The notes: generated by a model not told the origin, from the letters alone. Positions 31,981 through 58,820 are shown, counted from the first letter of the stretch. The stretch is DNA of 64,000 bases from Asterias rubens (GCF_902459465.1 NC_047074.1:124001-188000), one strand, 5' to 3'. Numbers and translations: made by a program.

Positions 31981-32153
31981 TCTCGTCTTAAGGTGAATGT
32001 ACTTTCCTGAAGACGAGCAGAGAATACCGTTTGAAATGTCGGGACCACACCAGCTCTTTTCAGAGCCAACACTTCTCCCAAAAGAGATTTACACATGATT
32101 ATACTCCCAAGTGTAGTTATTTTCCACACCATGCAAAGCTTCAAACATCACTT
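31981..32153 (+). mobile_element. Short retroposon with hammerhead-like core, copy A
   Basis: CTGAAGA at 32007-32013, GAAAT at 32033; tail CAGAGCCAACACTTCTC..AAAGAGATTTACACATG..CCATGCAAAG shared with copies B and C. Confidence 0.7.
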
Positions 32154-32911
32154 ACTCTGATTTAAATGGTTGAAAAACAAAGGTTCAAACTTTAAGTAAA
32201 CTGCCACCAAGGTCTAACTTTAATGGCGCTTCTATAAGCAAACACAATCTAGCACTCTTCAGCGGTTAAGTAAAGCACCTGGGAGCATTGGATTTGGCGC
32301 TATTTCTAAGTGGCATGGTACGTTCTAGAGTTCAAAGAAAAACCATACCTGGCTTAATTATCTACCAACCCTTCACAAATCTTTTAAGCTAATAATGATA
32401 ACCTAAAGTGCAGTACACCCTGTATTATCTACAAGTATACTATACCACCAAGTCTTTAAAACGAGTCAAATATTTGATTTGTTTTTGGCTAATGATTCCA
32501 TGCATACGTAATACTTGTATTCACACCTCATGTATTGTTTAACATAATTCTGATTGTGCCCTTAATTAAAAATCTTCCCAAATGACCATATATAGATAAT
32601 TAAAGGCACCACACTATGTCAAATGAAGGGACTCTTCATGCATTACAGATCACTCTGCAATGTCAAGATAAAATTACAACAGCTGGTATTTTGCAGCTGC
32701 AAAAACCATGTGGTGATTAATGCTGTATTGTTCATGTAGAAGCATATGAACTCTTTACCCAAGTTAATAATTGACATCCCCAGTCCACCAGACATGGAAG
32801 GTATGAAACTTCACCAGACAGATGACCTACATGTGTTTTATTGCTAAATACTTTATTCTCTTTCAGTAGTTAAAGAGTATGTATTTTTATATATTTATAT
32901 TTGGTATAGTA

Positions 32912-33924
32912 TAGGGCCACTGATTTTCCGCGATCGCGGAAAACGGACGGAATTCGCGGAATCTGCCCTTTGAAACGGAAAACGGGATTTCAGAAAATTT
33001 GATTTTTTTTCCTTTTTTTTTTTTTCTTGTCTTGACGCCAAAACTATTGAAATTGCACTCTTTATTAAGATTCTTTTTGTTAAACTAAAAAAGCATCAGA
33101 AATCAGACCATTAAAAAGTACGAGATCGTATTCCGTGGATCATTCTGTTCTACTTCACACCATCATCCATGTTTACACACACCATGTACACACGTTGTTA
33201 ACATGGTTCAGCCATGGAGGTAGAATTAGCGAAGGGCATTATTCGCGGCACGTTTTTAACATTTTTTGTTCACCCAAATTGCATTTTCTCCCTCTCTTTT
33301 ACCAACAATAATACACAAACTAGCTTACCTATGATCTATAAGAACACATACAATGTTTTTTCATCTCGGAAAGGTCTAAAATAAAACCGTAAACTGTCAA
33401 CATTCTGTCGCCAAAGCGAAAACAAAATGGCTGACATTTTGTTTGTGGATGGAGAACGGTCACGTCCATAGACTTGTTCCCAAGTCTTTGATCATGCTGA
33501 AACAGCGCCCTCTTGTGGATACACTCCTGTTATTAGCCTACGATGTGGCTGATGCAGAGAATCAACTGCAGTTTTAGACTTGGAATCAAGTCTATCACAT
33601 CATGTGCATTGATACTGCAGTTACAGTGCAACCTTTTTACCCTGACTACATGTTTTTGTTTCATCGTATACAAAATAATCCACAATTTAAAAAAAAAAAA
33701 TTAAAGTATTTTTTTGAAATTGTTCAGTTCAAATGAACATTTTACGAAGTCAGCAGTGTAACTTATCTCAAATTGATTTTTATAAGTGTGTCTGTCCCTG
33801 GGTATTAAATAACCTTTTATCTAATTAAAAAAACATGAAACGGAATTTTTTGTGCCTGAAACGGAATTCATGTTTTTGCCAAACGGAATTTGCACTTTTC
33901 TGAAACGGAAAATCAGTGGCCCTA
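32912..33924. mobile_element. Non-autonomous hAT-like DNA transposon, ~1 kb
   Basis: 19-bp perfect TIR TAGGGCCACTGATTTTCCG / CGGAAAATCAGTGGCCCTA with clustered subterminal AAACGG. No clean 8-bp TSD, no ORF. Confidence 0.8.
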
Positions 33925-35376
33925 ATGGTACTTGATGTGAAATTTTTATGTCATTTTTGTCATTGTGCCCTTTTGTGCCTTTGTTATTTTTATTGTCTGG
34001 ATCGCCTTTAGATAGTGATTATTTTCGCTTTTTGGTTATCCGCAGGCTTGTTTTCTGTGTAGTCTTACTTTTATTGCCTATTCTTTGTATGTACTGTTTG
34101 CCTGGAAATAAATAAATAAATAAAACAAAATAAATAAGGGTTACATGATGTATGTATCTTCTTTAAAGTGTAAAATGTATACAACACAATGTTCATAATT
34201 TGTATAATGACAAATAGGCTACCTAAAACACTAATTTGGGAAGTGAATTTAATGTACAGTACATAAAGGCATTAACAGACAGTACCAATGTACACATTCC
34301 AATCCTTAGATTTTCAAGACATGCTCCATGTACATACTGTAATGTACATGTTGTAATGTACATTTAATGTATTTGCTTTGAAAACAAAGAAAATAAATAA
34401 TTCCTATCTCCTGCCAAGTCTGGAATTTCACCTCTTTAAAGGGCCAGACCTGTCCTTTGATAACAAACCCTTCTTATAATAGTCCAAACATGAGACTGGT
34501 TTACAAGGACATCAACACCTTTAAACTCTACTACATGTACTTCTGAATTATGGAACTCACAAACATACAATGAAGGTCTACATAACATGTGCAATCTCTA
34601 ACCCTTTGTTTAAGATATTAAACCCATAGTGCATGTACTACATTACTTGAAACTTAATAGCAACATCCTTCATAAAATGATTTATTGCCCACAGACAGCA
34701 GACGGGACAGCTGCTTTAAAGAGGCTAGTTAGTGCAAAGGAATTATTGTTCAACTATATACGAGTAAAAATTAAAACAAGTATCTAGGCACTTCCAGTAT
34801 AACACTCAAAATCCTGCAGTTTGGGTAAGTCAGTGTTGAAACTAAGAGAAGGAATTATAGAATTGAACAACCAAGGGAGAAAGATTGAAGTTTAATTAAA
34901 GGTCAAGTGTCACAACTGAGAACAGTGTAACACTGAGCTGATTAGCAGAAAATATATCGTTAATTAATAGATTTGCTGTTAAGGCAACTCTTAAGTGTGG
35001 AACCAGTCATTGTAGTTCATTTTCTCCACCAAAACTCATAAAGAAGTCAGAGTTTGCAGAGGATTCAATAAAAAAAAATATTTTTAAAATATTCTCAACT
35101 CAACTACACAACAATAACAAAAAGTAAGCTATTCCAATATTTCACACTTGTTTACTTTTGTCAAATATTTTAATCATGCATGCAACAGGAAAAGTGAAGC
35201 CAGCCAAAACATTGTACTGAGTCAGAATTTCCAAAAGCTTTTTAATGAAAGCACAGCAATGTTTTTTATAAGCGTAAACTGTCAATATGTGAGAGAAACT
35301 TTGCAAAAGCTGTCATTTAGTATTAACACAGAAACACCCATAAAATGCCAAAATAATTTTTTTATGTTAATCTTAC

Positions 35377-35508
35377 CAAGTAATGCCTGGAAGAGACGAC
35401 TTTTAAAGATGCGAATGACACGTTCGATGGCATTGCGAAGCGGTCGATCTCCAGGCTTCGTCAACTTGGAATGATAATCTTCCAATAACTCCAACGCCCG
35501 ATGGGCCT
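35377..35508 (-). CDS. dlg1: Dlg exon 2, L27 domain
   Basis: Acceptor TTTTTTCACAG, donor G|GTAAGA. Encodes [44 protein letters not shown], near-identical to the Drosophila DlgS97 L27 domain as recalled. Confidence 0.96.
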
Positions 35509-35995
35509 CTGTGAAAAAAAAAGTAGATGTAACAAATTGACAATTAGAGTGAATAGTATGACTTAACAAAATATAACTAGCACAGGTACATTCACATGCA
35601 TGATTGTAACGTATACATAATTAAGTTGAGATGATTTATTTTTATGACTTTTTTTTTAAAAAACAGTAACCTAACAATCAATAACAAAAAATCAACTGAT
35701 AAAGGAAGCGTTATCACCTCACACAAAATCTTATGTGTACATTAAAACAGTACACACTTGGTCATGATGTATGACTATTTATTATTAAAAACACTTTACA
35801 CCATTTGTGCAAAACCAAGTGAAGCTCTGGTGGTAAAATTGTAATTAAAAAAGAACCTGTAAAACAATGAACACACACACAAGATAATTTTAATTATTAT
35901 AGCACCTAGTAAGGTCAATATCTAAAATTAAATGTAATAATTTTCTTGTTCAACACGCCACAAGTGTGAAATGTTTGACAGTTCCAGGTTTGACA

Positions 35996-36170
35996 ATAGA
36001 CCTTATGCATTGACGTCATCCAGCCGCCATCTTAGAGGAAAAACGGTGACGAAACAATCGAGACGCACGGATTTGTACACGCGGAGTCCAGGATTGGCCA
36101 ATGAACAACCTCCTTTTGACCTCTAGGTGAGAGCGCCCTACTGAAATGACGTCATGTGCATAAGGTCTAT
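35996..36170. mobile_element. 175-bp MITE with ATAGAC...GTCTAT ends
   Basis: ATAGACCTTATGCA-TTGACGTCAT versus ATGACGTCATG-TGCATAAGGTCTAT. Confidence 0.85.
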
Positions 36171-36306
36171 AGGATGCTACATTTCCGAAATGCTATGATT
36201 GTGTTCATATTGAAACCTCCCAAAGTGGTATGATGTTGAAAAGTACATTACGCACATTCTGAAGGTCCTCAAAAATGGTATCTTGATATGAAGTTTAATA
36301 AAAAAA

Positions 36307-36478
36307 GCTTTAATTACTGAACAAATTGCAATGCTTAAAAATGTCATGGAATCTGTTTACAGGGCTTTAATTACTGAACAAATTGCAATGCTTAAAAATG
36401 TCATGGAATCTGTTTACAGGGCTTTAATTACTGAACAAAATGCAATGCTTAAAACTGTCATGCACTCTTTTTACAGGG
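36307..36478. repeat. Tandem repeat, 3 x 57 bp
   Basis: GCTTTAATTACTGAACAAA... at 36307, 36364 and 36421. Confidence 0.95.
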
Positions 36479-39400
36479 AAGACTTTTGTTCACTTTTAGT
36501 TTTGGTTTAAAACAAAACACTCCATTGCAGTAATGTGGACAATGTACACATCTCTGCATTGTGTTACTAACCAGAGTATCGGTTTGGTGTTAATATTCTT
36601 ATATGGACCGTTTCAAGAGGAAATATACAGAAATAAACACAAAACAGTCATACATGGGGCATCAATTGTCGAACACCAAATTCCTTGATTGTGATTGTGA
36701 TGAACTACAGTGACTAATTTTACTGACTTTCTTTATCAAAACAGCAAATGCATCATTCAGTGTTGTCAATGTTGGGAAGAGGAATGACCCCAAGATATTT
36801 AACACAAGTATTGACTTGTACTATAGTTACAGTACACTGTGAACTGCACCACTGTACAAAAGCACCCCTGATCATGCTTTGCATTATGTATACTTGACAT
36901 AGGAATGTAAACAAAAAAATGCCATCAGGAAAAGGACACATTGTTGATGCAATGAAACAAATCACCATCTGTGTCTGAACAATGTCCCTAGTCTTTCTTG
37001 AGAAAGACCCTGCTAAAGTCAAAATGTCAGGCCACTATATACTATTATTATTTTGCCTTCATACCTGGATAGGTCATTTTGGTTGGTAAGCCATTTACAA
37101 GCTATTCTGTTTTCTCATCCACCACAACTAACAATGATGTTGGAAACCTTAAGAGGATCGACCAGTGAACAAGTCAACAGTTAATTGGCAAGCTACATGT
37201 AACTAGTCCTGATGGCTAGTCACTGAAAGGTTCAAAAGGAAAACCTGTAGGGTAAACAGTAATGAGGCAAAAATAATAATTTACTGAACAAGGAAATGGA
37301 ATACCCATCTCACCATACCACACCAATGCACATTTTGTGTTCAGCTTACAAACAATAGTCAATTCTATGTTTACAAAAGAGTCAGTGCTGAAATATGCAA
37401 TTTGACCTTTGATCTTTGGTTTCAACATGTAATAAAAGTGCTATAGCTAAATTGTTTTATAGTCTTTTCAACCTACAATCATACTTGATTGTGTGCAGTG
37501 TCCATATGTAGGACACGTTGGTACTGTGATTAAAAACAAATGCATGAATCATCGTTTCAAAATGTGTAATTTAACTCATTGTTCTTACTTCTAAAATCAT
37601 CCAACTATTGCAGTCAATTTATTGTGCAACTAAAACTCAACAAACGTTGCAAAAATTTCATTCCAATAATTTGTTCTATTGTGGACTATTTCATTCCCCA
37701 CCTCCATGACTATATTATTATATAGAATTCCCTTCTGCCTTTCCACCATCTTAAGACAATATGACCAAATTGCACCCTGAAGTACAAACAATCATAGATC
37801 TCGCTGCATAGCATTATGGAATCCCAGGCAGAGATGATGTACCATTGACATGATTGAAGGTCACATCTGCAGATGAAAATAGCTGTCAATAGGTTAAAAG
37901 AACTGCTTTAAGTCATTACCAACAACAACAATAATCCTTCCACTGGAAAAGACAACAGAGCACAAATCTAACTGCTTTAATGGTCACAGCAAAACATGCA
38001 TATTTGCATAGCATTAACAAGAATTGCATGGCAACCAGCACCATGAAATCACAGCAGGCCCGGATCAGGCTTTAGAGTATGTCAAGTTTTTGGTAAAATG
38101 AAAAATATATAAGCACTAGGAGCATTCATTATGGCTTGATTAACAACAGGAGGTGTGATTTAAGCTGTTACATTGGTCAATACCTTGTTGGTTCGTGAGT
38201 ACAGAAGCCTACTGAGTCAATAAATTTAGGTTACATTGTGATCAATCTACTATTTTAAAATCACAGAGAACTCAACTTGTCCTTGAAACAGGTCATGAGT
38301 TAAAATACAAAGTCACACCTTGTTTAGACTGGTTCCCTCTAGCTGACTTTGTGTGTTTAAATAATTATTGTTTTTCTGGCTAGGGATTTAGTTTACTGAT
38401 GCATAAAGGTGGCTGCTGAATCCTGGCTTAATTAAATGCCTCAGAGAAATAAACACTGATAAGTCAAAGACTATACATTTTCCTATTATTACTTACATTT
38501 CAATAGGCTTACACATTGTGTTTCATATTACATGTAGGGCCTACTGTGTTTAAATTTACTTTGTGAATGGAAAATCAATGTTATGCTTGTCCTTAAAATT
38601 GAGTGTAACATCATCAGCTCTGTGCTCTTTTCCCAGGGGTTTAGATGAATTTTACACCAGGGTATCTTTAAAATGCACTGTTGATATTAAAAGCATCATC
38701 AAAAATTCATAAAGAATCTCAGTCTGGCGCTAGTAAACTGCAGTATACATGTAGTTCATAATTAACTTGTATTTTTTAATCTAAGAGTAGATTCAAATGG
38801 GAAGGCTTAGGGGGGGGGGGGGTACTAGACAAACATGTATGGTCCGGTATAAAATCAGATTGTGAGGGAAGGTTGGAGAACAGACAAATTACTTCTAACT
38901 GATTGGTTTTTTATAGTTTGAATCCTGACTTCTCTGACTGTACAAATGACTGATAGTTTGAGTACAGCACAGGGTCCTCTAGCACTGGTGTACAATACAC
39001 ATTGACAACTTCAGCACAGTGAAATCCTCAGGAAATATGTCCTATTTAACAAAGGGTTGAGTTATCCATGGACATGTAACAGACATCATGGCATAATTGA
39101 CATAAATGCATCGTGATTCAAACCTTAGGGTTGTCTACTTGAGATGTATTTTCACATCACAATGTTTTATTGTTTTCTGTGAGAGCCCTTGATACTTCAG
39201 AAGTACACCTGAAACTAGAAACAGTTTGTTGTGTACATTTGTTGTGTACACCTTATTTCATGTATTTCTGTGAGCTTTTTTACCGACATGTTCCCACGGC
39301 CTGCTTACTTTTGCACTTCATAGTACGATATTACTCACACGTGAGGCTTGTACTCGTATAGGAAGAAGAAGTACATACAATAAGTCAGCAATTTACTTAT

Positions 39401-40415
39401 GTTTTATACAATCAACATAAAGCCCTAATACTTTAGTTGAGAACACAGAAAACACTAGGCTCATAGAGGAAACAAGTTATACCCAGGCCAGGAAGGCTAC
39501 ATTGTGAGTTCTGACTAACACTAATAGATGGGTCTGTGTAGCCTAGGTAGCTTTAATGGTGGAGGAAGCCTCTAATGTTTTGAAAGGACTTCCTGTGTGA
39601 CTTTAAGTAGGGAACTTCCTGTTATTAAGTTATTTTTATAACATTTTTTTTTTAAATGAAGAACACATTATTTTCCATGGTCAAAGTTTTCATGAGTTAT
39701 CCAGATCAGGTCAGGCACATAACACATTTGTAGAACATGTAGTCCTAAAAAACAATCACTTTGAAAACCGTCAGCCTCCCAAACTGAAGAGTGAAGACTA
39801 ACCCAAATAACAGGAGTTTGTTTATCACCAGGCTCGGCACATTTCTGTAATAAATATTATTACAACTTTTTGGTTGAGTGACCAATTTGCTCATGGATAA
39901 TGGAACATACATGTAGGTATAATTTTCTAGTGTAAAAATTTTCGTTATCTTCGAGTTTGAGTTACATTGTTTAGAAATTCAGAAAGCGAAGCATCCGTTC
40001 CAACAGCTGTTTTTATGTTTGATAAAACGATTTTGGGGGTTGAATAAAACTTGACTTTGTAGTAAAATCAATAATGTGCATACTGTAGTTTGAGTGCAAT
40101 GACAATAATATTACTAATTACATCCTTGTGTACATGCACAAATCAACGCATGGCTTTGTTCCTATTGTTGTTAGGATGTCAGTAATTGCATATGTTTTAA
40201 GTACAGTTGTGTAGTGCCTGGAATTTCACATGACCTACAGACACCAATGCATTGGACCATGTTGTAGAACTTGTCCTGTTAGTGGCTGACAAAATGTATA
40301 ATTATTTAACCCTTGTGCTGTGGTCAAATCCAAGGTTTCTATATTTTTTTAGTTGTGACAAGATTTTTAACTGTGATTTTTTGTGTGTGATTATGTTGCA
40401 TTAGCAAGTCAGGCA

Positions 40416-40548
40416 AAGTTTCTGTATGGTGCCGCCACCACTTTTTCATTTGATATGAAATAATATAGTAATAATTTACCTCAACCTTCAATGAGATATC
40501 CCATTTTGTAAAAATAAGTGAAAAAGTGGTGCCGCCATACGGAAAGTT
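40416..40548. mobile_element. Small MITE (GCCACCACTTTTTCA family), copy 1
   Basis: Inverted ends GTATGGTGCCGCCACCACTTTTTCA / TGAAAAAGTGGTGCCGCCATACGG; interior is the reverse complement of the 55144 copy. Confidence 0.8.
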
Positions 40549-41087
40549 ATAAACTTAATATCCCCAAGTCACCCCTTTTAGCTATAGGCTTTTTTATTTA
40601 AATGTTTACACATACATGTAGCTACATGCATTCACCTACATGTAGCTAGCTAAGCCATGGAGGGTCTACCCACCACACTCCATACTCTCAGGTGATGACG
40701 CTACCTCAAATAATAACAACTTAAATCATAAGAAGAAGCATGACTAGATGAAATATGGAACGAAACATGTAAAATTGATACAAAATCAATTTAACTATGA
40801 TAAATAAATTATAAACAAAAATACAACATTAACAACAGCAAAATTCACCAAATCATTTAGTTGGGCTACAGCAGTTGTTAATGTTAGACCTACCTGGTTT
40901 CACTTTCAAGGTCAAGCATATTCATATTAAATCATTATCAAGTATCATTATCAAGTATCATTAGTAGGCCCTACTAGCCTACTACAGTCATCATACTTGG
41001 AAAGATATTCATATCTAGTTGCAATAACGTAACCCTCCTCCTGGCGGCCGTCGTTACGTTATCGCAATTCATTCAATTCAATCATTC

Positions 41088-41267
41088 ATATCCTGCCACC
41101 ACTTTTTCATTCATTTTTATCAAACTCAAAGACAACAGTATCTGACTCTTCTTGCTTGATTGATGTCGAGGGAGGAAGAGTAAATTCAGAACCACAATTT
41201 TATCTCATCCCAAATATAATGGCATTATATTAAATAATAACGAATGAAAAATGGTGGCAGGAGATAT
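41088..41267. mobile_element. Related MITE-like inverted repeat, copy 2
   Basis: ATATCCTGCCACCACTTTTTCATTC / GAATGAAAAATGGTGGCAGGAGATAT; interior differs from the other copies. Confidence 0.6.
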
Positions 41268-41339
41268 TTTCCCCTTTTTTTTTGGGGGGGGGGCTTTATT
41301 TTATACATACATAACAATGTTTAACCATATTATACAAAC

Positions 41340-41358
41340 CTTGTTTTCGCACGGGCAT
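41340..41358 (-). CDS. dlg1: Discs large (Dlg/SAP97) MAGUK, coding exon 1 (MPVRKQ)
   Basis: ATG CCC GTG CGA AAA CAA G|GTTTGT on minus strand. MPVRKQ is the known N-terminus of L27-containing DLG1/DlgS97; the phase-1 end fits exon 2. Confidence 0.9.
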
Positions 41359-41759
41359 AATTCCAAGCAAATTTGATCGTAAATCCTACGATTATCCGAG
41401 GAAAAAGAGTTAAGCTCCGTCTCACGAGTCACCAGTTGCGACGCATGTAGCAAACACTCACACACGTACACAGCAGACGGCCCGGCCCACACGCGCACGG
41501 TATGGGATTGTAGGCGCGTAAATAATCCACAAACTTTGCTGATACACACACGACACGTTACAACACTCCTCCAGTGAACGTCCGTGAAGTCCAAACAACA
41601 CTCCTTCAAATAAAGCAATATAAGTAGAAGACAACCAACCAACTTGTAGATATAGCACCCTATGAAACAGAGTAGGTCTCCTATGCCTTGAATGTTTCCA
41701 ACAACGGTGTAAATGTGTACGGTTCTTTAAAGTTTATGTGGCGTTGAATGTGCTGGTTA

Positions 41760-41850
41760 TTTACTCGAATGGCAAAATGGCGACCTCGAGTGACCGCGCG
41801 TCGACTCTCGATCACGTGACAATGGTGACCTACTAACCTTTGACCTACAC
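41760..41850. promoter_or_regulatory. Putative bidirectional promoter between Dlg and TMEM126
   Basis: CpG-dense patch between divergent genes, with YY1-type AAAATGGCG (41774-41782), E-box TCACGTGA (41812-41819) and DR1-like TAACCTTTGACCT (41834-41846). Confidence 0.55.
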
Positions 41851-44050: not shown

Positions 44051-44372
44051 AACCTCAATTGACTGATAAATGTGGAATAAAATCCAGGAAACTCATTTAA
44101 AAGAACTGGAGCTGTGAAAACTTTCACATGAACACACTGTTAAATGTAGATTTCATTCTTCAAAAACAGAAAACTGGATCAAGAGAACAGGAGCTGTGAA
44201 AACTTTCACATCAACACGCTATTAAATGTGGATTTAATTCTTCAAAAACAGAAAACTGGATCAAGAGAACAGGAGCTGTGAAAACTTTCACATCAACACG
44301 CTGTTAAATTTGGATTTCATTCTTCTGAACTGAAAACTGGATCAAGAGAACTGAGGCTGTGAAAACTTTCAC
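44044..44372 (+). repeat. 82-bp minisatellite in the TMEM126 3' UTR
   Basis: GCTGTGAAAACTTTCACA at 44111, 44193, 44275 and 44356; degenerate first unit at the stop codon. Confidence 0.92.
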
Positions 44373-45417
44373 AACTTTTCTGGTTATTTTGAATGAGTAA
44401 ACATGTACAAAACTGTACATTATTTTAAATGTTTGATTTTAATCACTACTTTGATAAAAGGGATACTTGTAATAAGTCTTAGCATGATGAAAAAAATAAA
44501 CAAATTATGTCAAAATAATGAAAAATTTAAGGAAGAGGATGGCCTTTTTATAGTGAATACAACCTATGCAGTAGGAGGAATTGCACCATCTTGATCAAGG
44601 GTCATGGTGGATATTCATTCTACAGGGGTTTACTGGGTTATCATGTACACTAGCCTGGTTTACATTGTCTAGTAAGAATTGTTGTTGGTTAGTAAATAAC
44701 ACTTCTCAGTTTGCAATGTGGGCTACAAAAACAAATGTACAACATACTTGGTTAAAATGCTCAGATTTCATCTTTTCGGATGTGAATAATAAACTTATAA
44801 AATTTGTTATTTTAGTTGTTGAGTGTGGATATGTTACTTCCTTTAACATTTAAACTGGGTGAGATAGCTACCATTAGTACATCAGAAAGATACATTTATG
44901 ACAATACATGTTTACAATCAGGGCTGCTAAACCTTCCATGGGGCTTCTTTAACAAATAAAATACAGCACAAGGCCTGGGTTTGTGGTATCGCAAGGAAAA
45001 CATCTCCTAAAAGTTGTAACCAACTGAGTTTTTCATCAATGTTTTCCTGGTATTTTTTTCGAAATGCTACTAGTTAAGTTACCATTTTGTTCACTTTAGT
45101 AGACTTATTTACTGTGGCACTTTTTGTTGTATTCGACATGGAGGTCGTTCGACAAGAGTATTGGTGCCTTCAACAAAGACCACTCGATATTGGTGAAGAG
45201 GCTAATGCAAAAGTGTAACCAAACTACATAGCGCCCTCTTGTGTCAAATATGGAACCTTTTGAAACAACCGCCGAAACTATTAAAAACTGCCACATTATT
45301 TTTTCACAGGATACAGGAGTGCAGAGATCCGTGTGCCAAGGACACTAAGGTTATTTAAAGAGGTTGACATTCTGAACTTGAGCTGTGGTTAAACAAGTCA
45401 GGGTTGACCAATGCCTG

Positions 45418-48505: not shown

Positions 48506-48650
48506 TGAACGCGACGTCAAGTTTTCCCCTGAAGACATGGATATATACAGTTCGAAACGTCGCGTTGAGACCACACCGGCCCTGTTCAGAGCCTTTACTC
48601 ACACAAAAGAGATTGAACACACTTTTGTACCGGCAAGTTTACTATTTTAG
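48506..48650 (+). mobile_element. Short retroposon with hammerhead-like core, copy B (P450 intron 2)
   Basis: AACGCGACGTC (48508-48518), CTGAAGA (48529-48535), GAAACGTCGCGTT (48554-48566), then family tail. 3' limit approximate. Confidence 0.72.
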
Positions 48651-48738
48651 TAACTTCATCAGCTTTCTGAAATAATATTATGAGTCACGTGATAATTTGA
48701 TTATTGTATAATCCAGTTTTCAATTCAATACTCTGCAG

Positions 48739-48951
48739 CTGTCTAGTGCAGTATCCAACGTGATCTGCCAGATGTCATTCGGTCATCGATTCGATTATGA
48801 CAACAAGAACTTCGTCATGCTTCAAGAGAACCTGAGAAAGAGGATGATGATCGGACGCACAAGCCTCGTCAATTACTTCCCTCTATTGTTTTATACTCCT
48901 TTGTATAAAGAACTCAGAGAACTGGATGCTGCACGCAGAAAACACATGCAG
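48739..48951 (+). CDS. Cytochrome P450 exon 3
   Basis: AVSNVICQMSFGHRFDY; borders CTGCAG| and CAG|GTTGGA, phase 0. Confidence 0.92.
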
Positions 48952-49077
48952 GTTGGAATTTTGTCAAAGTCAGGGCGAAAATAACGCAAATACTTCACTT
49001 TAACTTTTTTTTTACAATTCGTATAATAAACCAAGCAGATATACTTATGGCGTTACCGCAAACCAAATAATTATTGG

Positions 49078-49210
49078 TACCTCACCATAAGTCATATAAA
49101 CCAATGCATTTATTCAACTTGGTATCTTCTGAACTTGACAGGCTACCTCACCATAAGTCATAATAAACCAATGCATTTATTCAACTTGGTATCTTCTGAA
49201 CTTGACAGGC
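49078..49210 (+). repeat. 66/67-bp tandem duplication containing the P450 exon-4 acceptor
   Basis: TACCTCACCATAAGTCAT...GAACTTGACAGGC occurs twice. Confidence 0.95.
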
Positions 49211-49430
49211 TATTGTTAAAGAGCATCAGTCTACGTTTGACCCTGAAAATATCAGGGATATGATTGACCTGTTCTTCAAGGAAGTTCGTGAGAGTTCAAA
49301 GTGTCCATTTATTGAGGAGAATGTCGAAAGGTTGCTCCATGATCTGTTTGGTGCAGGCACTGATACGTCAGCTAACATGTTGGCATGGTTACTGCTCATC
49401 ATGACACAGTACCCAGATGTTCAGCTAAAG
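49209..49430 (+). CDS. Cytochrome P450 exon 4
   Basis: FDPENIRDMID and I-helix DLFGAGTDTS; donor AAG|GTAGGC. Confidence 0.93.
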
Positions 49431-49651
49431 GTAGGCGTGGTTATAGGATTGGAGGCTTGGGCCGAAGGAGGTGCGGGTGTGACAACATCGATTCGAATTT
49501 AGCATAATCGTTTTGGGCTAGGCCTACCATACAAAATAATCATAAATCGCATCAACAATTCTCTGTTCATTATCAGAATAGGGGAGCCAACAAACATGCA
49601 ATAAGATTAATGTCGGCATATTTGTTAATGTCCATGATGTTTCTAAATCAG

Positions 49652-49985
49652 ATCCAAGAGGAGTTGGAACACGTGATCGGTTGCGGACGTCAACCAACAT
49701 GGTGTGATCGCTGTGACCTACCGTATTGCCATGCCGTCATGTTAGAGGTGTTCCGATTCAGACCAGCAGGACCACTAGCCGTGCCTCATCTCGCCACATA
49801 TAATACTAAGTTAATGGGTTATGATATTCCTAAGGGAACCACGGTACTCGTTAACATCTATGCGGCCCATTTCGATCCGGATTACTGGGATAACCCAGAG
49901 CTGTTCCGACCGGAGCGGTTTTTGTCGAAAGACGGGAAGGAGGTTGTGAAGCCGACGCACGGATCATATCTCCCGTTTGGAATAG
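49652..49985 (+). CDS. Cytochrome P450 exon 5
   Basis: ExxR (EVFR), PKGTTVLVN, FRPERF; donor G|GTATAC. Confidence 0.95.
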
Positions 49986-50320
49986 GTATACTTCATTCAA
50001 AAATCTTAATGGAACTTCCATTCGGATTTTTGCAGTTATACATTTCAGTGTCAGAGTAAACATGTTTTATACGAAAATGGCAAACGATTATTGCATGTGA
50101 ATTAAGTTTTCTACCGTTCGAACAGTAATCACACGTGGGGTGGTAGGTGCTTTTGACATTGAACATTAGTGTGAAAGAAAACATTCCAGCAGTTCATTTT
50201 ACGGTGTTGTCCAATACCGGCGAGCTTATGGGATGAGGACGTATATAAGGGAAGTTACGAGTAGCACAAATTAATTGTCTAGATATTAATTGTTTTCCAC
50301 TTTGCCCTTTTTGTATGCAG

Positions 50321-50526
50321 GCCCCAGATCGTGTCCTGGAGAACAGCTAGCTCGCATGGAATTGTTCCTGTTCATGACAAACCTAATGCAGAGGTTTACT
50401 TTCCAACAACCAGATAACGACCCGAAACCGGACATGGAAGGCGTTTTCAGCGTGACCCTCTCACCTAAACCATTCCGTGTCTGTGCGATTCCCAGGCACG
50501 CACATACAGCTTCCAAAACGACCTAG
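50321..50526 (+). CDS. Cytochrome P450 exon 6
   Basis: Completes heme signature FGIGPRSCPG; TAG stop. Six exons sum to 1524 nt, 507 aa. Confidence 0.95.
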
Positions 50527-51712
50527 CCCTGTGGTCTTTCACTTTCGTATTGTTTTATATTATGTGTACAGCGCAGAGGATAATAAGTGTGGCCTTAGCC
50601 CTTTAAGGATTTCACTCAAACCCACGCATTATGCAGATTTCACCTGGTGATCAACGTTATTGACTTGAGTGCACTGCCTTTACTCAGACAAAAAAGGGTA
50701 TTTTCCCCACATTATGACGGGGAAAATAGACTCACAGAATGTTTTGCAGACTGTTCACCGGGATCGGTACCAATTTGGTCATTGGTTTTTGTTTTCTTGG
50801 CTTGGATTGAGCAGTTCTACATCAATGAATCCACATTTACTAAAATAAATTCACATACGCATCAGTTTGTGTAGCAACTGGTTATAAATACATCAAACAT
50901 ATAGTTTTTTACTCTTTTGAATTAGGTAGGTAATTAATCGGTGAACAATGAGAAATTTGTGTGATGGTTCGATAGTTCTGTTTGCTTGCTCTGGTATCCA
51001 AAAAAGGGTATGATTAATATAAAAGTAAACAAACGTTAACAATGGAAATTAAACAATAGTTTGACCATAAGTCATTTTTTGGTAATTTAATAAGCTAGTT
51101 TTCTTTGTGCTATCAGTTTGTTTTATTATAGCCCAGATTTACAAAAAGTTCCCCTGTACCCAAACTTTACTTGTTACCAGTGTTTCACCTTAGTCCTCCC
51201 ATATCTGCATTACCATCAAACATTTATACAAATTTTGTATAAATGTAATACTTTTTGCATAACGGACGTGTACTGTCCAAGAACCTGAAATAATAGACAA
51301 CCTCGACTCAGCAGACGAGCTGAGTTGAAGTGCGCCCTCCTGTGACATAACATCACTTTGATTAAAAGTCTGGTTCCTACTTCCATGCAACGAGTTTAGA
51401 GTATATCCGTCTGGTGCACTGTCATTCTGATGTAGACTGGCACTTCCTGAAAACAACCGCTGTCATACAAAGAGTAGTGTGTTTACTATTTAGTCTTGCA
51501 TCTCAACTAAACTTCGCGAATAAAAATTCCTTCAAGCTGATTTGGGTAAGAAAATATCATTTGCCACATTATAAGATATAGAGGAAAACTGGAACGCTTT
51601 GCACTTGGAATCCGTACTTATTTCATTGACACTGGATGAAACAAAGTGAATTTACTTTCAAAAAAGTGTCGGGCAAGTTGGACTTGATAATTTAATGCTT
51701 GTTTGTTTGTTG

Positions 51713-51862
51713 NNNNNNNNNNNNNNNNNNNNNNNNNNNNNNNNNNNNNNNNNNNNNNNNNNNNNNNNNNNNNNNNNNNNNNNNNNNNNNNNNNNNNNNN
51801 NNNNNNNNNNNNNNNNNNNNNNNNNNNNNNNNNNNNNNNNNNNNNNNNNNNNNNNNNNNNNN
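51713..51862. other. Assembly gap (150 N)
   Basis: Run of N. Confidence 1.
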
Positions 51863-52030
51863 AATGTTGGGCTTCAAACAAAACAACAATTGGGTAAAAT
51901 CAGCAGGGTAGGCATGGGTAGGAGTTAGGCGATCTGGGCCCCATCATTGGCACAGAATAAAAATTAGAGTGAAGATCAAACTTTGTTCTTATTATATTTT
52001 GTCAATTTGTACCTTTACAGTCATGACACC

Positions 52031-53383
52031 ATGGATCAGCTCATTGACAATGACATTGAAACAGATGACTCAGCCAAGGAGAAACCATATACCTGTGACG
52101 ATTGTGGTAAAAGCTACCTCAATCGGAGTAGTTTAAGGAGACATCAAAAGGACCATTTATCTGGTGACAATCTCATCTCAAATGACATTAAAACAGAAAC
52201 CCATATTTGTGAGGATTGTGGCAAAAGTTACTCCAATGTCGGCAATTTAAGAAGACATCAAATTCTTCATTCTGGTGTGAGACGTTTTGTTTGTGACACC
52301 TGCGGGAAAGACTTTGCTGTGAAAGGAAGCCTGAAACAGCATCTGTTGGTTCACTCTAAGGAAAAACCTTTCAAATGTGACACTTGCAACAAATCTTACG
52401 TACGAAAAGTAGACTTGAAACTTCATCAGACGATTCATTCTGGTGAAAGACCATTTGCTTGCAAAGTTTGTGCAAAATCGTTTGTGCGAAAGAAAACCTT
52501 AAAGCAACATGAATTACTCCATGTGGAAAGACCATTTGTGTGCGACACTTGTGGGAAATTCTTCTCGTCAGTAGATCAGCTGCAAAGCCATGAGCTCATC
52601 CACACTGACGATACAAAGTCCTTCAGTTGTGAGATTTGTCACAAGTCTTTTGCTGAGATGTACAATCTAACCTTACACAAGACTGTACACTCCGGTGAAA
52701 AACAATTCTCTTGTGACATCTGTGGGAAATGCTTCACACAGAAACGAACCCTTCGTCGACATGAAATTATGCATACTGACTATAGGCCATTCAGTTGTGA
52801 TGTTTGTGGTAAAGCATTTGCTTTTAATGCTCAATTAAAAAATCATCAAGCCTACCATACTGGAGAGAATCTTTTAAGCTGTGAAATTTGCGGTAAACTC
52901 TTCACAAAACCTTCTAGTTTGAAAAAACATCAGATAGTTCATACTGGTGATAAGCCATTTGCTTGCCCCGTCTGTAGCAAAGCCTTCGGAAGTAAAGGGA
53001 ATCTTAAAGAGCATCTATCAATCCATAACGGTGAGAAACCCCATGTATGTGCTATATGTGGGAAGGGTTTCTCAAGAGGGACTAAACTAAGGGAGCATCA
53101 GACAGTTCATACAGGGCAGAAGTTATTTGTTTGTGGGACGTGTGGGAAATCCTTTACACTTCGAGGCCACCTTAGACGTCATCAGACCTCAGCTCACACT
53201 AATGATCGGCAGTTTGCTTGTAAAATGTGTGGTAAATGTTTTGCTACAAGTAGCAATCTAACAGAGCATCAGAAAATTCATGATTCAACACTGGATAAAT
53301 GCCAGTTGTTTGATAAATTTGTAGCAAACATGTCTTCCAAAGAAACAAGTTCAGGCCTGTATACTTTGTTTTTGAAAGAGTAA
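52031..53383 (+). CDS. C2H2 zinc-finger protein, 14 fingers, 450 aa
   Basis: Repeated CxxC-x12-HxxxH with TGEKP-like linkers. Acceptor CCTTTACAG at 52020, first in-frame ATG at 52031 (the ORF-track start lies in the intron). Likely non-coding exon ending TGG|GTAAGA at 51545. Confidence 0.9.
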   Translation: MDQLIDNDIETDDSAKEKPYTCDDCGKSYLNRSSLRRHQKDHLSGDNLISNDIKTETHICEDCGKSYSNVGNLRRHQILHSGVRRFVCDTCGKDFAVKGSLKQHLLVHSKEKPFKCDTCNKSYVRKVDLKLHQTIHSGERPFACKVCAKSFVRKKTLKQHELLHVERPFVCDTCGKFFSSVDQLQSHELIHTDDTKSFSCEICHKSFAEMYNLTLHKTVHSGEKQFSCDICGKCFTQKRTLRRHEIMHTDYRPFSCDVCGKAFAFNAQLKNHQAYHTGENLLSCEICGKLFTKPSSLKKHQIVHTGDKPFACPVCSKAFGSKGNLKEHLSIHNGEKPHVCAICGKGFSRGTKLREHQTVHTGQKLFVCGTCGKSFTLRGHLRRHQTSAHTNDRQFACKMCGKCFATSSNLTEHQKIHDSTLDKCQLFDKFVANMSSKETSSGLYTLFLKE

Positions 53384-53536
53384 GGGCACCAAGGCATTTT
53401 CACTTGGTAAAGGGCACCCTATGAGGAAATAGTAAGTTTCTACTGGATCATTTCAAGGGCACCAAGGCAATGACCAGGGGGCATGGACGCAATCGTCTCT
53501 GTTACCTCTGTGAGATAATCACTACTATCAGGTCTG
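53352..53536. mobile_element. Small MITE-like insertion overlapping the zinc-finger stop codon
   Basis: Ends CAGGCCTGTATA / TATCAGGTCTG, internal repeats of AAGGGCACC(AAGGC); related fragments near 15614-15690 and 20357-20410. Confidence 0.65.
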
Positions 53537-55143
53537 CAAGTCAATACAACCCGTCAAGCTTTGTTGTTACAAAGGGGGTTGAATCTTGCCCAAAGGTACA
53601 CTTTGTTTTAGATATACAATTTATAAATTTTAAAAACACTGAACATCAAACTACTGGAAAATTGTACATTTATATTTCATTTAAAAAGCAGTATAATACA
53701 AAAACCTACATTTGAATAGACAATCAAATATCACAGAAGTATTGATATTTCAATTGGACCATTGTTATAAACAAGCTGTCAAAAGCTGGCTTATATTTAT
53801 TATTATAAATACCTGTGTTTTTTTTTTTTTTGTAGTACCATTTCTTATCTTGTATTATATATTACAAACAAGATTATTTAAAAAAAAACACTGTTCTTGC
53901 TACTGTTGTTTCAAGGTGTGTTATTTTATGATATAAAGGAATTATAGTACTTGTAGCTTTTTTTAAGTAATATTATTGCCAAGCATTATTGGGCATTTTT
54001 TACGTTAAACTTGTTAGCAAATTGGGTTTTGTTCACTGAGATTGTTAATCTGTCGTTCTTCCTTGAAACCCAACAGGGGAAATGAAGGAAGATTCTACTA
54101 CAGCTGGGTCCATTGGATTTAGGTCTTGCCTACACACACCATAAAAGTAATGCCATTATATGTTGCAACCCGTGTTAAGTCCGAAATGACAAATGACTCA
54201 TAAAGTGTGTCATTTTGTATTGAAGGAATGTAAACAAAAACTCACTATGCATTTTTTTTTTTTTTTTTTTTTTGTGTAAACCAAAACCAAGTATATATTT
54301 GTATGAAGTTAGTGCATGATACATGTGATGTATTGAATGATAAACATGTTTATTAATTTTTATTTTTTATTTGAGTGTATATTCATTCAAGTGTTAGAGT
54401 CATTAAAAATATATCAACAACTAAACTTGGTCTCAAACTGTTAAATCATTTATTTCTTTACAGTATAATTTATATTATTATAAAGTATTCTGATAAAAAT
54501 GATGTTGCTACTCACCTGTTCATCGGTTCTCTACCTGTCTGTGTGGGTGCAATACACTATATCACAGCCTACGGTTCTTTACCTCAATGTTTGAGGAGAC
54601 TTTGGTTAAATTTAGGTTTCAAAGTTGGTCCCAATAACCTTGAGAGGAAATGGAAGAAGGGATGTGCATAATTATATGCAGCAAATCGATTTGTGTTTGG
54701 GGAAAAAAGTTTATTTTCAGGGGGTACTACTTTCTGGGGGTAGCAACAAGTCCAAACGGCTGACCTGCCAAAAATTGAAAAGAAATCTGCAGATAGGTTG
54801 TCATAAAACAAATTGGATTGTTTTTTAAGAGGCTGGCAGACTGAAGTAGTATTTGTATTATAGTGTTTGGAATATTAAGCATTTATTAGCGATTGGTGCA
54901 AAGGAGTTTAGTGGGTGCACCCCCGTGCTGTGTGTCCAGTGTTTTAGTCGAGCGCCCTCACTCGGCGCTTTTAGTGTTGACATAGGTCGAGTCGACCAAT
55001 CAATTGATCTAAAAATCAACTGATCGAAATGTCAGAATTGAAAAAAAGAGCATCGACAACTTGCTCTTTGTTTGTCAACGCGCAACCAAATTGGCTAATT
55101 AATACTGGGTAAGTTTTTAGTTTTCAGAGGGAAGGTGTAGGAT

Positions 55144-55267
55144 AACTTTCCGTATGGCGCCACCACTTTTTCACTCATTTTTACAAAAAGGGATATATCA
55201 ATCAGGTAAATTAGATACTATATTGTTTTATTTCGAATGAAAAAGTGGTGGTGCCATACGGAAACTT
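55144..55267. mobile_element. Small MITE (GCCACCACTTTTTCA family), copy 3, best preserved
   Basis: TTTCCGTATGGCGCCACCACTTTTTCA / TGAAAAAGTGGTGGTGCCATACGGAAA. Confidence 0.88.
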
Positions 55268-55425
55268 TTCCAATTGAAACAGTATTGTTTACACTATGAC
55301 TATTAATAATTATTATTGATTTTCTTTTGGTTGTTTTTTTGTTATCCTTTGTTTTTGAGTAACATTTCTTACAACATTTTTTCTATTTTATTTACATGTT
55401 TCAATTTATGCAGAGGGATTTTTCG

Positions 55426-56340
55426 ATGATGGAAACTTCAGCATCTTCAATCCAAGACTCTCTGATCTTCAAGCAACATGACCTCATCACTTGTGACTCC
55501 AAACATGGGGGGAGCAATGATCAAACTGAGTGTGAACAACACTCGAACAGTAACTCTCAAAACAAGCAGCAACTGAAGAAAAACCAAAAGAAATTTGCCT
55601 GTAGCTTTTGCAACAAACAATTCACACGTAGAGGCAATCTGAAGCAGCATTTTAGAACTCACACTGGAGAGCAGCCATTTGTTTGCGAGATATGCGGAAG
55701 ATCATTCTCACAAAAGCAGAGTTTAAAACGTCACCAAACTGGTCATATTGAAGAAAAACCCTTCGAATGTGACATTTGTGGGAAATTTTTTCCAAACGAA
55801 CAAAAACTCAAAGGACATCGAAAGCTTCACACCGACGTAGAAGTTTGGGTTTGTGACATCTGCGGAAAATCATTCGCTCGACAAAGTCGCCTAAAATGTC
55901 ATCAAAGAGTCCATACTGGTGAAAGACCATTTCCTTGTGAAATTTGTGGTAAATCTTTTGCCTTGAAAAGAAACCTCAAGGACCATGGAACGATACATTC
56001 TGGCAACAAACCATTTGTTTGTGATAAATGCGGCAAGGCATTTTCCCGAAACAACAAATTACGAGAGCATCAACTAATCCACAATGGAGAGAAGTTATTT
56101 GTTTGTGGAACATGCGGTAAATCCTTCAAAGTAAGATATTACTTAAGGCGACATCATCTCTCAATACACCCGGAGGATAAACCTTTTTTTTGTAAAGAGT
56201 GTGGCAAATCATTTGCAGAAAACTATAATCTAAGACTGCATCAGAAAGTTCATGATTCTGCATTTGACAGGAGAAACTTGTTTGCCCAATTTTTGTTAAC
56301 TATTTCTCCAAGAAAAACAGCCCAAGAACATGCAGAATAA
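55426..56340 (+). CDS. C2H2 zinc-finger protein, 8 fingers, 304 aa, paralog of the upstream gene
   Basis: Acceptor TTTATGCAG at 55413, ATG at 55426, non-coding exon ending TGG|GTAAGT at 55108. Last three fingers and tail align with the upstream gene. Confidence 0.9.
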   Translation: MMETSASSIQDSLIFKQHDLITCDSKHGGSNDQTECEQHSNSNSQNKQQLKKNQKKFACSFCNKQFTRRGNLKQHFRTHTGEQPFVCEICGRSFSQKQSLKRHQTGHIEEKPFECDICGKFFPNEQKLKGHRKLHTDVEVWVCDICGKSFARQSRLKCHQRVHTGERPFPCEICGKSFALKRNLKDHGTIHSGNKPFVCDKCGKAFSRNNKLREHQLIHNGEKLFVCGTCGKSFKVRYYLRRHHLSIHPEDKPFFCKECGKSFAENYNLRLHQKVHDSAFDRRNLFAQFLLTISPRKTAQEHAE

Positions 56341-57575
56341 TCTTCATATGATTATCTTTGTGAACATGTTTTGCTAGTAACATTACATGTAACAAACAAT
56401 AATCACCGAAAGTCTACATCCTGTTAAAACATGTAGCTGCCTGTATATAGTGTATAAAATAAATAATTTACTGTGCACTTTATTTTTTTAGAAACTTACA
56501 ATGGGTCATAACTAATTGCAAGATTGTTGGCTTCATTGTATAGAAACGAATACATACCAACTACTCAAGTAAAATCTGGCAATGATCCAAACTTAAAAAT
56601 GGTGGCTTTGGGGAAGAATACAGTATCATGAACTTGAAGTTCTTGAAAATTAAAAATGTTGTGTCTAGCTTGCCGAGTTTAACGTTTTACAAAATCCTGC
56701 GAATTATATCTGCTTTGCAAATAAATAAAACCTTTGTAAAATAAATAATTAAGAAGTTTACAAGTGTAATTTTTTTGCCCCCGATTTGTCTCCAATAGGT
56801 CAAAAAATCTTGAGTCCAGTAACTTCATAGAATGTTTTTTTTATTTTCTCTAAAACAATGTTGACAAACAGAGAATGTTGTCAACCAGAAAACTAAATAC
56901 ATAAATTACTAATTTACCAAAAAAGGGAGGATGGGGGTAATCTTTTACTGTGTGAAAACAGTTTTAATGTTTCGCCAAATAAAAGGGCACACTTTGCCAA
57001 GCCTATTTAAATACATACTTTAGCTACTCGGGGCCCCTTCGGTGCAAAATTGGTGATCAATGTTTGTAAACAACTAATTATTTTATAAAGTGGGCGGGGT
57101 CGGGTGTGTTTTGTGGTTTGTCGTCTAGCGCCCTCACTTGATAGTTTTCTTTGTTAGACTGGTGCAGTGAAGTACTTGCAAAGTCAGTGACGTCTACCTG
57201 TTTACGCTTGTATTATTGTTGTACGGGCGTTCTGACCGTAGAGTTCATGATTTGCTGGGAGTAAATTTCAAGTAAAAAATCATTTTCTTGAGACTCACGA
57301 CTAGTCAGATGGCAATGTGATCGTTTGTATTTTACATCACGGTAAGTATTACAAGTAAGTGGTACAGTGATCACTTTTTCAAATGAAATGAATCAATGTT
57401 TGTTGTACATCCTTTTTGTAGACTCTTTTAGTTTTTTAGTTTTTCTTAGCCCTAATATTTCTTTTTCTTATTTTGGGGGCGGGGTCTGGCTATAAAAAAT
57501 AAAAAACATTAAGGGGGTAAACTAGCGACAGGGACCATCACAGGGTCGGGAGGAGGAGTGTTACGATCTTCGGGA

Positions 57576-57730
57576 AAATGTACGTATGCTGCCACTACTT
57601 TTTCATTTGTTATGAAATAAATTAGTATCTCATTTACTCAAGTGAGATTTTGCTTTTGTTTTGTTGGAAGTTTTGGTAAACCATGGTAAAAATTAGTGAA
57701 AAGGTGGTGGCACTGGCATGGTACAGAAAT
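57576..57730. mobile_element. Small MITE (GCCACCACTTTTTCA family), degenerate copy 4
   Basis: CGTATGCTGCCACTACTTTTTCA ... TGAAAAGGTGGTGGCAC. Confidence 0.6.
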
Positions 57731-57893
57731 CTATTCAAGTTCAATCAAGTTAGTTATGACTTGAATTTGAAAACAAACGAACACAAATCTCACAATTTTC
57801 TTGACTTACTATTAATTTTGGTGTACTTTATTATAAAAGTAAAACCTGATCTTCAATTTAATTTTTGTTGAATCCTTTGCAGATATAAACAAA

Positions 57894-57992
57894 ATGACGG
57901 TATTTAACCTCTACATCTTTGACCGTAACGGTGTGTGTTTGTTCTACCAGGAATGGAATCGGCATAAACACTCTGGGCTATCTCAGGAAGAG
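57894..57992 (+). CDS. TRAPPC1: TRAPP subunit 1 (Bet5), coding exon 1
   Basis: MTVFNLYIFDRNGVCLFYQEW matches recalled human MTVHNLYLFDRNGVCLHYSEW. Upstream non-coding exon ends ACG|GTAAGT at 57341. Confidence 0.95.
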
Positions 57993-58275
57993 GTTTGTTT
58001 ACATCAAAATACTGTCAACATTTTACTCTGTTCAAATACAAAAATCTTCTGAAAATGCGCTAATTATTAATTGAATAGATAGAGTATTTTAATTGTTTAG
58101 AAAACTTATGATGATGAATACAGCCTAACAGTCTCTAAAGGTGACAGGCCAGTCCATGTATTTCACGGCAGGAGGAGGGACCGCGGTGAGGAGGGCTACG
58201 TTATTGCAACTTCATGTCTCCAATTAAATCCAATTCAAAGCTTTTAATGTTGTATCTGTCTTTCTCTTCTCATAG

Positions 58276-58346
58276 GAGTTTAAGTTGATGTATGGAATGA
58301 TATTCTCCATCAAGTCATTTGTCAGTCGCATGGCACCGGTGGATTT
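58276..58346 (+). CDS. TRAPPC1: TRAPPC1 coding exon 2
   Basis: EFKLMYGMIFSIKSFVSRMAPVD, followed by the U12-type donor GTATCCTTT. Confidence 0.95.
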
Positions 58347-58820
58347 GTATCCTTTTTAACCAAACCAGTAACTGGTTCTCAGCTCAATCAATTATAATTT
58401 TATAACGACACCAAACCCAACCCTGAATTCTTAGGACAGTTCTCAGTCTTATTGAGTAGTAAGTTGAAACTTTTCATGGGGTGAGTATAATTAGGTGAGG
58501 TTTGTGTTAGCGGCATGTGTAAATCTCTTTTGAGAAGTGTTGGTTCTCAAAAGAATCGGTGTTTGACAACCCAAAGTTTCGATCAGTATGACCTGATTGT
58601 CTTCAGGATAAAAGTCTTATTGAATAAAGCAAAATCAACTCTTTTGATGAATTTAGGGTCACCATCTGAGAAGGATGTAATTTTACTTTAAAATTAAAAC
58701 CATGGATGTAATGTAAGGGTATCGATAAATTGATTTCCTGCTTTGGGATTAAAGGGCATTCTATTCTAAGTACAACTTTCCCATTATGATTCCTTAACTG
58801 CTTGTTTTTACCATTCTCAG
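58347..58820 (+). other. U12-type (minor spliceosome) GT-AG intron
   Basis: 5' site GTATCCTTT and branch point TTCCTTAAC at 58790-58798, about 22 nt before the AG; both exact consensus. Confidence 0.93.
58456..58612 (-). mobile_element. Short retroposon with hammerhead-like core, copy C, with 11-bp target-site duplication
   Basis: Minus strand CTGAAGA-CA-ATCAG-GTCATA-CTGAT-C-GAAAC. AGTCTTATTGA flanks it at 58445-58455 and 58613-58623. Confidence 0.8.

Follow-up and report, generated by a model that had tools for sequence, protein, structure and literature searches.

The window analysed here is a 64,000-nucleotide stretch of the Asterias rubens genome (NC_047074.1:124001-188000; G000:C14:124001-188000 in a 417.6-Mb assembly), and it holds members of a short, non-coding retroposon family in which a hammerhead motif is followed by a histone-type stem-loop. 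An earlier note on this DNA had drawn attention to three copies with the common string CTGAAGA-C-hairpin-GAAAC and a shared tail, and had attributed them to a mobile family of the Penelope-like or retrozyme kind. A sensitive blastn search of the window with six family queries returned exactly three members, at 32005-32154 (+), 48521-48657 (+) and 58613-58514 (-), the last reaching approximately 58456. The copies are mutually homologous members of a dispersed family and the common string and tail had been read correctly, with slight shifts of the borders (Table 1). The interval 31981-32001, previously taken as the start of copy 1, is flanking sequence, and the tail fragment proposed at about 49030-49090 was not matched by any of the six queries; that stretch overlaps an unrelated tandem repeat (67 nt x2).

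Each copy has decayed in its own way. In copy 1, GAAAC has become GAAAT, one mismatch is present in helix II, and a CpG transition has cost the stem-loop its first base pair. Copy 2 has lost most of helices I and II and carries a 5-nt insertion after the cleavage site. Copy 3 has lost the cleavage triplet (TTT), and its helix II reads AAUCAG/CUGAUC, the third pair being a compensatory U-A. The three copies are old, decayed relics in or near a cytochrome P450 gene, and their present transcription is passive only.

Table 1. Positions of the family members in the window and of the related features discussed in the text (window coordinates unless a locus or chromosome is named; ^, predicted cleavage site).
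Feature	Position	Strand	Remark
Copy 1, long-tail form with internal deletion	32002..32154	+	~75-88% identity to other members
Copy 1 minimal hammerhead motif	32003..32044	+	read against the criteria of PMC4209133
Copy 1 helix I, 5' strand	32003-32006	+	
Copy 1 CUGAAGA	32007-32013	+	
Copy 1 unpaired C	32014	+	
Copy 1 helix II	32015-32020 with 32027-32032	+	
Copy 1 GAAA	32033-32036	+	
Copy 1 predicted cleavage site	after C32040	+	
Copy 1 histone-type stem-loop, AGCTCT-TTTC-AGAGCC	32052..32067	+	RF00032 23.4 bits, E 0.02, at 32047-32091
Copy 1 purine-rich AAAAGAGATTT	32080..32090	+	histone downstream element look-alike, 12 nt after stem
Copy 2, old diverged member	48521..48657	+	intronic; ends ~80 nt upstream of cytochrome P450 exon
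Copy 2 hammerhead core	48529..48561	+	CTGAAGA 48529-48535, GAAAC 48554-48558, GTC 48559-48561
Copy 2 stem-loop, GGCCCT-GTTC-AGAGCC	48578..48593	+	one mismatch
Copy 2 AAAAGAGATT	48605-48614	+	3' of stem-loop
Copy 3, old diverged member	58456..58613	-	RF00032 16.2 bits at 58518-58562
Copy 3 CTGAAGA	58606-58600	-	core
Copy 3 GAAAC	58580-58576	-	core
Copy 3 stem-loop	58557-58542	-	
Copy 3 AAAAGAGATTT	58531-58521	-	
Assembly gap, not part of element	51713..51862		>3 kb from every copy; flanks unrelated to the family
Third short element	L030:2019-2262		CUGACGA, U, GACUAG-AGCAAG-CUAGUC, GAAA, CG, UU^, GAGA; unrelated to main family
Histone genes with same signal (examples)	C5:5778054, C5:5779335, C7:5972866, C7:19596872		

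The P450 exon occupies 48739-48951 (PF00067, 27.5 bits), with copy 2 about 80 nt upstream of its splice acceptor. Just upstream of copy 2, a 10-nt inverted copy of positions 48557-48566 lies at 48508-48517, so that the hammerhead core seems to be enclosed by a long helix; this short repeat is probably what is left of an inverted partner (see below) rather than a helix III. As the assembly gap is remote from the copies and its flanks are unrelated to the family, continuity across it is irrelevant to the finding. Two unrelated tandem repeats, at 44102-44373 (82 nt x3.3) and 36307-36478 (57 nt x3), also fall within the 31981-58623 span.

The family and its insertions

A BLAST search of the copies against the genome, as the earlier note had proposed, returned a large family: 1602 first-look candidates were obtained with the 173-nt copy 1 as the query and 3468 with a near-typical copy. 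The 34-nt head had 1461 genome matches with three mismatches or fewer, versus none for the reversed control. The family consists of well over a thousand short, non-coding, dispersed elements. Sixty family loci of approximately 3.2 kb were taken, 55 of them independent.

The copies become homologous abruptly where helix I begins, a few bases 5' of CTGAAGA. At the other end there are at least two discrete termini, a long form ending in ...CAAAGCTTCAAACAATACTTA and a short form that stops some 35 nt before it, and target-site duplications accompany each of the two; the 3' ends read ...AATACTTA or ...TTCTTCTTAT, without poly(A). Direct repeats scoring at least 8 (typically 7-13 bp) flank 10 of 23 single full-length copies, versus 0.9% of mismatched flank pairs, and these target-site duplications demonstrate retroposition. 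The opposite sense of transposition was considered, as the tails vary, and was rejected: the tails are discrete forms with their own target-site duplications, and the inverted partners described below are truncated at the head end.

Conservation was measured against the majority sequence of the family, from which the copies differ by approximately 5%. The CpG columns are the least conserved, and C>T and G>A changes appear at those columns in RNA reads, in keeping with the CpG decay suggested previously. This degree of divergence, together with the CpG decay, shows that the family is not young. Family words occur in data carrying four organism labels, one run being labelled echinoderm metagenome.

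The insertions take distinctive forms. In 13 of the 55 independent loci, an inverted partner truncated at its head end abuts the 5' end of the direct copy; the partners' own 5' ends are concentrated at query positions 33-43, the 3' base of helix II. Most copies are single, though the search for tandem arrays that had been suggested was successful: L070 contains three units of 180 nt, and a further tandem pair lies at C11:13900546-13900896. In L066 a full unit is preceded by seven 119-nt repeats, each made up of the head, the stem-loop and a 45-nt spacer peculiar to the array, and an inverted fragment stands in front of them all. Craig et al. (PMC8557442) describe partial tandems and an inverted, 5'-truncated copy beside the 5' end as characteristic of insertions of Penelope-like elements (PLEs), and such forms are not seen in the retrotransposition of long interspersed nuclear elements (LINEs; PMC8557442). 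The inverted, 5'-truncated partners and the arrays therefore match the insertion habit of PLEs.

Neither a poly(A) or microsatellite tail nor a head of the RNA polymerase III (Pol III) type was found in the family copies, and no copy gave a tRNA, 5S or 7SL match with Rfam. A tRNA-Phe origin was entertained, given that CTGAAGA matches a Phe anticodon loop and TTCGAA resembles a B box, and was discarded: neither an acceptor half nor a D-arm half is present, the T arm is unpaired and no tRNA model matches.

The minimal hammerhead and the histone-type signal

As described by Cervera and de la Pena (2014, PMC4209133), the minimal hammerhead of metazoan PLEs has a type I topology and lacks helix III and loop 3, so that helix III can form only between two motifs. 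Positions 15.2-16.2 are palindromic, a single nucleotide is left unpaired between A9 and 10.1, and G10.1 pairs with C11.1. Helix II is long and helix I short (4-5 bp), and most of the motifs are dispersed singly (PMC4209133). All of the published sequence features are present in the 5' 45 nt of the typical family sequence, whose head reads UCUC, CUGAAGA, C, GAGCAG-AGUAUA-CUGUUC, GAAA, CG, UC^, GAGA. A descriptor assembled from the published features gave 51 hits in the 350 kb analysed and none in ten shuffles. The hits form three groups: the retroposon family, the 3' tail of an autonomous PLE resident in the genome, and a third short element (Table 1).

The resident PLE has at least 149 GIY-YIG matches in the genome and open reading frames (ORFs) of up to 921 amino acids that are approximately 98% alike. 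In the encoded protein RVT_1 precedes a GIY-YIG domain at the C terminus, and the closest named relative of this protein comes from Asterias amurensis. Its motif reads GCCU, CUGAAGA, A, GGUCCG-GAU-UGGAUC, GAAA, GC, UA^, AGGC, and homology among the PLE copies ends 24 nt after the cleavage site, which places the motif in the 3' tail. The PLE and the retroposon family thus have the same hammerhead architecture with different helix sequences. No hairpin with a UUUC-type loop was present within the PLE sequence analysed, and PLE loci from relatives (L091, L092) had neither the motif nor any similarity to the family.

Some further observations concern the resident PLE and the third element. At L052:2364-2640 the PLE 3' end adjoins a satellite of about 20 nt, (AGGAGCAAAACCATATATAT)n, which may be a preferred PLE insertion target. 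Three near-identical tRNA genes (L035:126-198, 2443-2515 and 2759-2831; 48-54 bits) lie around a PLE insertion with partial tandem and inverted tails. The third element is bounded by 29-nt inverted repeats of the surrounding sequence, occurs as one copy within the 350 kb, and has a hairpin of its own, CAGUUCU-UUUC-AGAACUG, 125 nt downstream of its head.

The core CUGAAGA...GAAA and the GUC cleavage triplet are present in the family, and the core columns are invariant across families. Helix III is absent, and the palindrome is ACGU in the retroposon family and AGCU in the PLE, columns 38-39 having changed from CG to GC. After A9 the main family has an unpaired C, the PLE an unpaired A and the third family an unpaired U, and the G10.1-C11.1 pair is found in 7 of 9 distinct rows. 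Four of the six pairs of helix II and three of the four pairs of helix I have changed on both sides. Within the family, the L066 array variant reads GUA^AAGA and pairs with UCUU; the first pair of its helix I is U-A in place of C-G. When a single copy was folded, helix II and the stem-loop were intact (z = -2.4). A type III hammerhead using the upstream inverted fragment as helix III was rejected, as helix I would then be one nucleotide.

The alignment on which these counts rest (A3) comprises ten heads, and neither the main family nor the PLE owes its discovery to the descriptor. In A3, 95% of cells were paired, a fraction inflated by several rows having been chosen by a descriptor that demands pairing, and 25-40% were paired when the partner was slid by 1-3 columns. 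Of five measures, the observed number of further pair types was reached in 24 of 500 shuffles, and the observed values of the other four in 0-1 of 500. Both-side changes between families were found in 8 of the 12 pairs. Sequence, structure and behaviour in the genome support the ribozyme reading, and the putative ribozyme is of a known kind.

The earlier note did not remark on the histone 3' signal next to the hammerhead. The typical stem-loop, GGCTCTTTTCAGAGCC, starts 11 nt after the predicted cleavage site; behind it come AACAC or ACCAC, a spacer that varies, and AAAAGAGATTTACAC. The unit as a whole consists of the minimal hammerhead, the stem-loop GGCUCUUUUCAGAGCC, ACCAC/AACAC, a short spacer, AAAAGAG, the body, and one of at least two tails. 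A permissive Rfam scan placed the histone 3' model RF00032 directly 3' of the hammerhead in copies 1 and 3; nearly every other copy scored 18-32 bits, and L008:1543-1588 (6-bp stem, 4-nt UUUC loop) reached 35.4 bits, over the gathering score of 34. The histone genes of the genome were located with PF00125 and, among the matches listed, six have the identical 16-nt stem-loop followed by ACCA(C/A), 9 nt and AAAAAGAG. The pattern stem-loop-ACCAC...AAAGAG had 216 genome matches; approximately 85 of the 100 listed lie away from histone genes and read GGCTCTTTTCAGAGCC-ACCAC-TCCTTC-AAAAGAG or differ from it by one base. Conservation within the family is 0.9-1.0 in the stem-loop and the AAGAGATTTACACATGG block and 0.5-0.6 in the spacer between them, a layout like that of real histone signals.

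The element and the histone pre-mRNA 3' signal (RF00032 with the U7-bound downstream element) therefore share an identical 16-nt stem-loop with ACCA after the stem, and they differ in several respects. AAAGAG lies 12 nt downstream in the element versus 14 nt in histone genes, and the A-rich 5' flank is displaced by two C. No histone ORF was found upstream of the element's signal, which is instead preceded by the hammerhead, and the signal stands near the retroposon 5' end with about 100 nt of element after it. The U7 snRNA model had no match in a genome search that was itself uninformative. Separately, seven exact histone-type stem-loops lie on one strand of G000:C4:2336860-2343665, approximately 0.47-1.66 kb apart and with no listed PF00125 match adjoining; these could be a histone cluster missed by the PF00125 list, or an element array.

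How the elements may be copied

The probable explanation for these observations is that the copies form a non-autonomous, non-coding retroposon family of approximately 140-180 nt that is copied in trans by a PLE reverse transcriptase and GIY-YIG endonuclease. Dependence on a PLE is suggested by the motif architecture and the insertion forms. The non-coding family built on a hammerhead core, as first proposed, is upheld by the target-site duplications, the motif features, the resident PLE, the covariation and the insertion forms. Two heads on one transcript, from an array or from neighbouring copies, would pair via the ACGU palindrome to form a dimeric hammerhead and be cut after GUC. A host RNA ligase may then close the unit-length RNA, as in animal retrozymes, and the PLE enzyme would copy the RNA by target-primed reverse transcription. 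Through the histone signal this RNA, having neither cap nor tail, might recruit SLBP and U7 and so be stabilised or obtain its 3' end.

Several observations weigh against this explanation. Published minimal hammerheads cleave poorly in vitro (PMC4209133), and the paired fraction of the covariation alignment is inflated, as the descriptor used to choose several of its rows demands pairing. The family and the autonomous PLE analysed share no sequence beyond the motif architecture (blastn, word size 7), and the ribozyme stands at the 3' end in the PLE and at the 5' end in the family. A linked ORF for a Penelope reverse transcriptase and GIY-YIG endonuclease, which the earlier note had advised looking for, was not found within 1.5 kb of any copy among the 55 loci. 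The Rfam hammerhead models recommended there (RF00163, RF00008 and their relatives) had no match in the window or in 15 loci even at E 5-10, RF00163 had none genome-wide, and no such model matched the family even at E 10. This last point is weak: the models also miss the resident PLE's own minimal motif, and their silence is therefore not evidence against the motif.

The RNA evidence likewise gave no sign of processing. Two raw-read RNA runs (one organism label) and two contig sets were compared with the near-typical copy, and the reads cover the element only, not the flanks of this copy. Both strands were equally covered, and 96-97% of the reads run into unlike flanks, which suggests that many copies are passively transcribed within host transcripts. 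No pile of read starts or ends was seen at any position, the predicted cleavage site and the region after the stem-loop included, in ordinary libraries that are poor at such ends. No head-to-tail circle joint was present among the 15 joints listed of 40, which comprised opposite-strand joints from inverted genomic pairs and small duplications. The small circular or self-cleaved RNA that retrozymes had led the earlier note to expect was thus not visible in the RNA-seq of the two raw-read runs or among the joints listed.

A possible but less probable explanation is that the motif descends from a PLE hammerhead, no longer cleaves, and is kept as a structured 5' module that might, for example, be recognised by the reverse transcriptase or make it stall; the histone-like part would be a captured and functionless histone gene flank. 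In favour of this are the low in-vitro activity of the published motifs (PMC4209133), the lack of cleavage ends in RNA-seq, the concentration of the inverted partners' 5' ends at the 3' base of helix II, and the ability of PLEs to retrotranspose host sequences (PMC8557442). However, the core bases are invariant and the helices covary across families, as selection on a ribozyme fold would give. The stem-loop and AAAGAG blocks are conserved while the spacer varies, and amplified arrays retain the head and the stem-loop together.

It is rather unlikely that the copies are extreme 5'-truncated tails, or solo pseudo-long terminal repeats, of an autonomous PLE whose 3' end has a hammerhead and a histone signal, the latter serving as the non-polyadenylated 3' end of the PLE mRNA. 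The resident PLE does have a hammerhead within its 3' tail, and single dispersed minimal hammerheads have been ascribed to truncated PLEs (PMC4209133). However, none of the 55 loci extends upstream of the hammerhead, where the target-site duplications directly adjoin, and no copy has a PLE ORF within 1.5 kb. The one autonomous PLE analysed has a different tail without the stem-loop, and the relatives' PLE loci lack the module.

An ordinary LINE-dependent short interspersed nuclear element (SINE) with a hammerhead-like string by chance would also be short, dispersed and non-coding with variable target-site duplications, and would account for the silence of Rfam and the missing RNA sign of cleavage, but it is highly improbable: the copies lack a Pol III-type head as well as any poly(A) or microsatellite tail, the motif combines five independent minimal-hammerhead features (a chance expectation well below one per genome by rough calculation, and 0 in shuffles), the resident PLE has the same architecture, compensatory changes separate the families, and PLE-type inverted and tandem forms occur among the copies.

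Relation to known hammerhead elements

Few structured RNA motifs are as numerous in animal genomes as minimal hammerheads, and short hammerhead retroposons also have a precedent in Sm-alpha of Schistosoma, a SINE-like repeat with a tRNA-like Pol III head and a canonical, active hammerhead. The Asterias family resembles Sm-alpha in being a short dispersed retroposon that carries a hammerhead, and differs in lacking both the tRNA-like head and the canonical motif. With the minimal hammerheads of PLEs (PMC4209133) it shares the type I form without helix III, the palindrome, bulge, G10.1-C11.1 and helix traits, and the occurrence of mostly single motifs, some of them close together on opposite strands or in tandem. 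Unlike those motifs, the one described here stands at the front of a separate short element that has a body and tails of its own; no PLE ORF is attached to it in the 55 loci, and a histone 3' signal comes after it.

Animal non-LTR retrozymes are tandem repeats of 150-450 bp, each with a hammerhead, that yield abundant unit-length linear and circular RNA (PMC7229834; bioRxiv 10.64898/2026.07.22.740005). The family is like them in being non-autonomous and non-coding at 150-400 nt, in its type I hammerhead, in target-site duplications of more than 4 bp and in low GC (PMC7229834; bioRxiv 10.64898/2026.07.22.740005), as well as in a proposed PLE origin and the tandem arrangement of some copies. Its copies are, in contrast, mostly single, its hammerhead is minimal rather than canonical, and no linear monomer or circular RNA was seen in the RNA reads examined.

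The minimal hammerhead of this family is of an already known kind; the attached histone 3' signal makes it a variant for which no description was found, as none of the papers that could be searched describes a retroelement pairing a hammerhead with a histone signal. That the signal is functional, with the capless, poly(A)-less element RNA recruiting SLBP and the U7 small nuclear ribonucleoprotein after ribozyme cutting, is doubtful. If it were, a retroelement would be using the histone mRNA pathway for stability or 3'-end formation, and cutting at both sites would free a bare stem-loop RNA of approximately 35 nt.

The role of minimal hammerheads for PLEs is an open question (PMC8557442), for which this family offers a compact natural test case: a unit of 140-180 nt with the ribozyme at its very 5' end, natural arrays of two, three and seven units, and a resident, nearly intact PLE lineage that could be the helper. 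For annotation, the family explains the many orphan Rfam Histone3 matches to be expected in this genome. The position of the histone signal next to the hammerhead raises the idea that a ribozyme-processed retroelement RNA borrows the one cellular pathway for mRNAs without poly(A). Were that so, well over a thousand copies would, as a by-product, have spread preformed terminators of the histone type across the genome, and host genes could adopt some of these.

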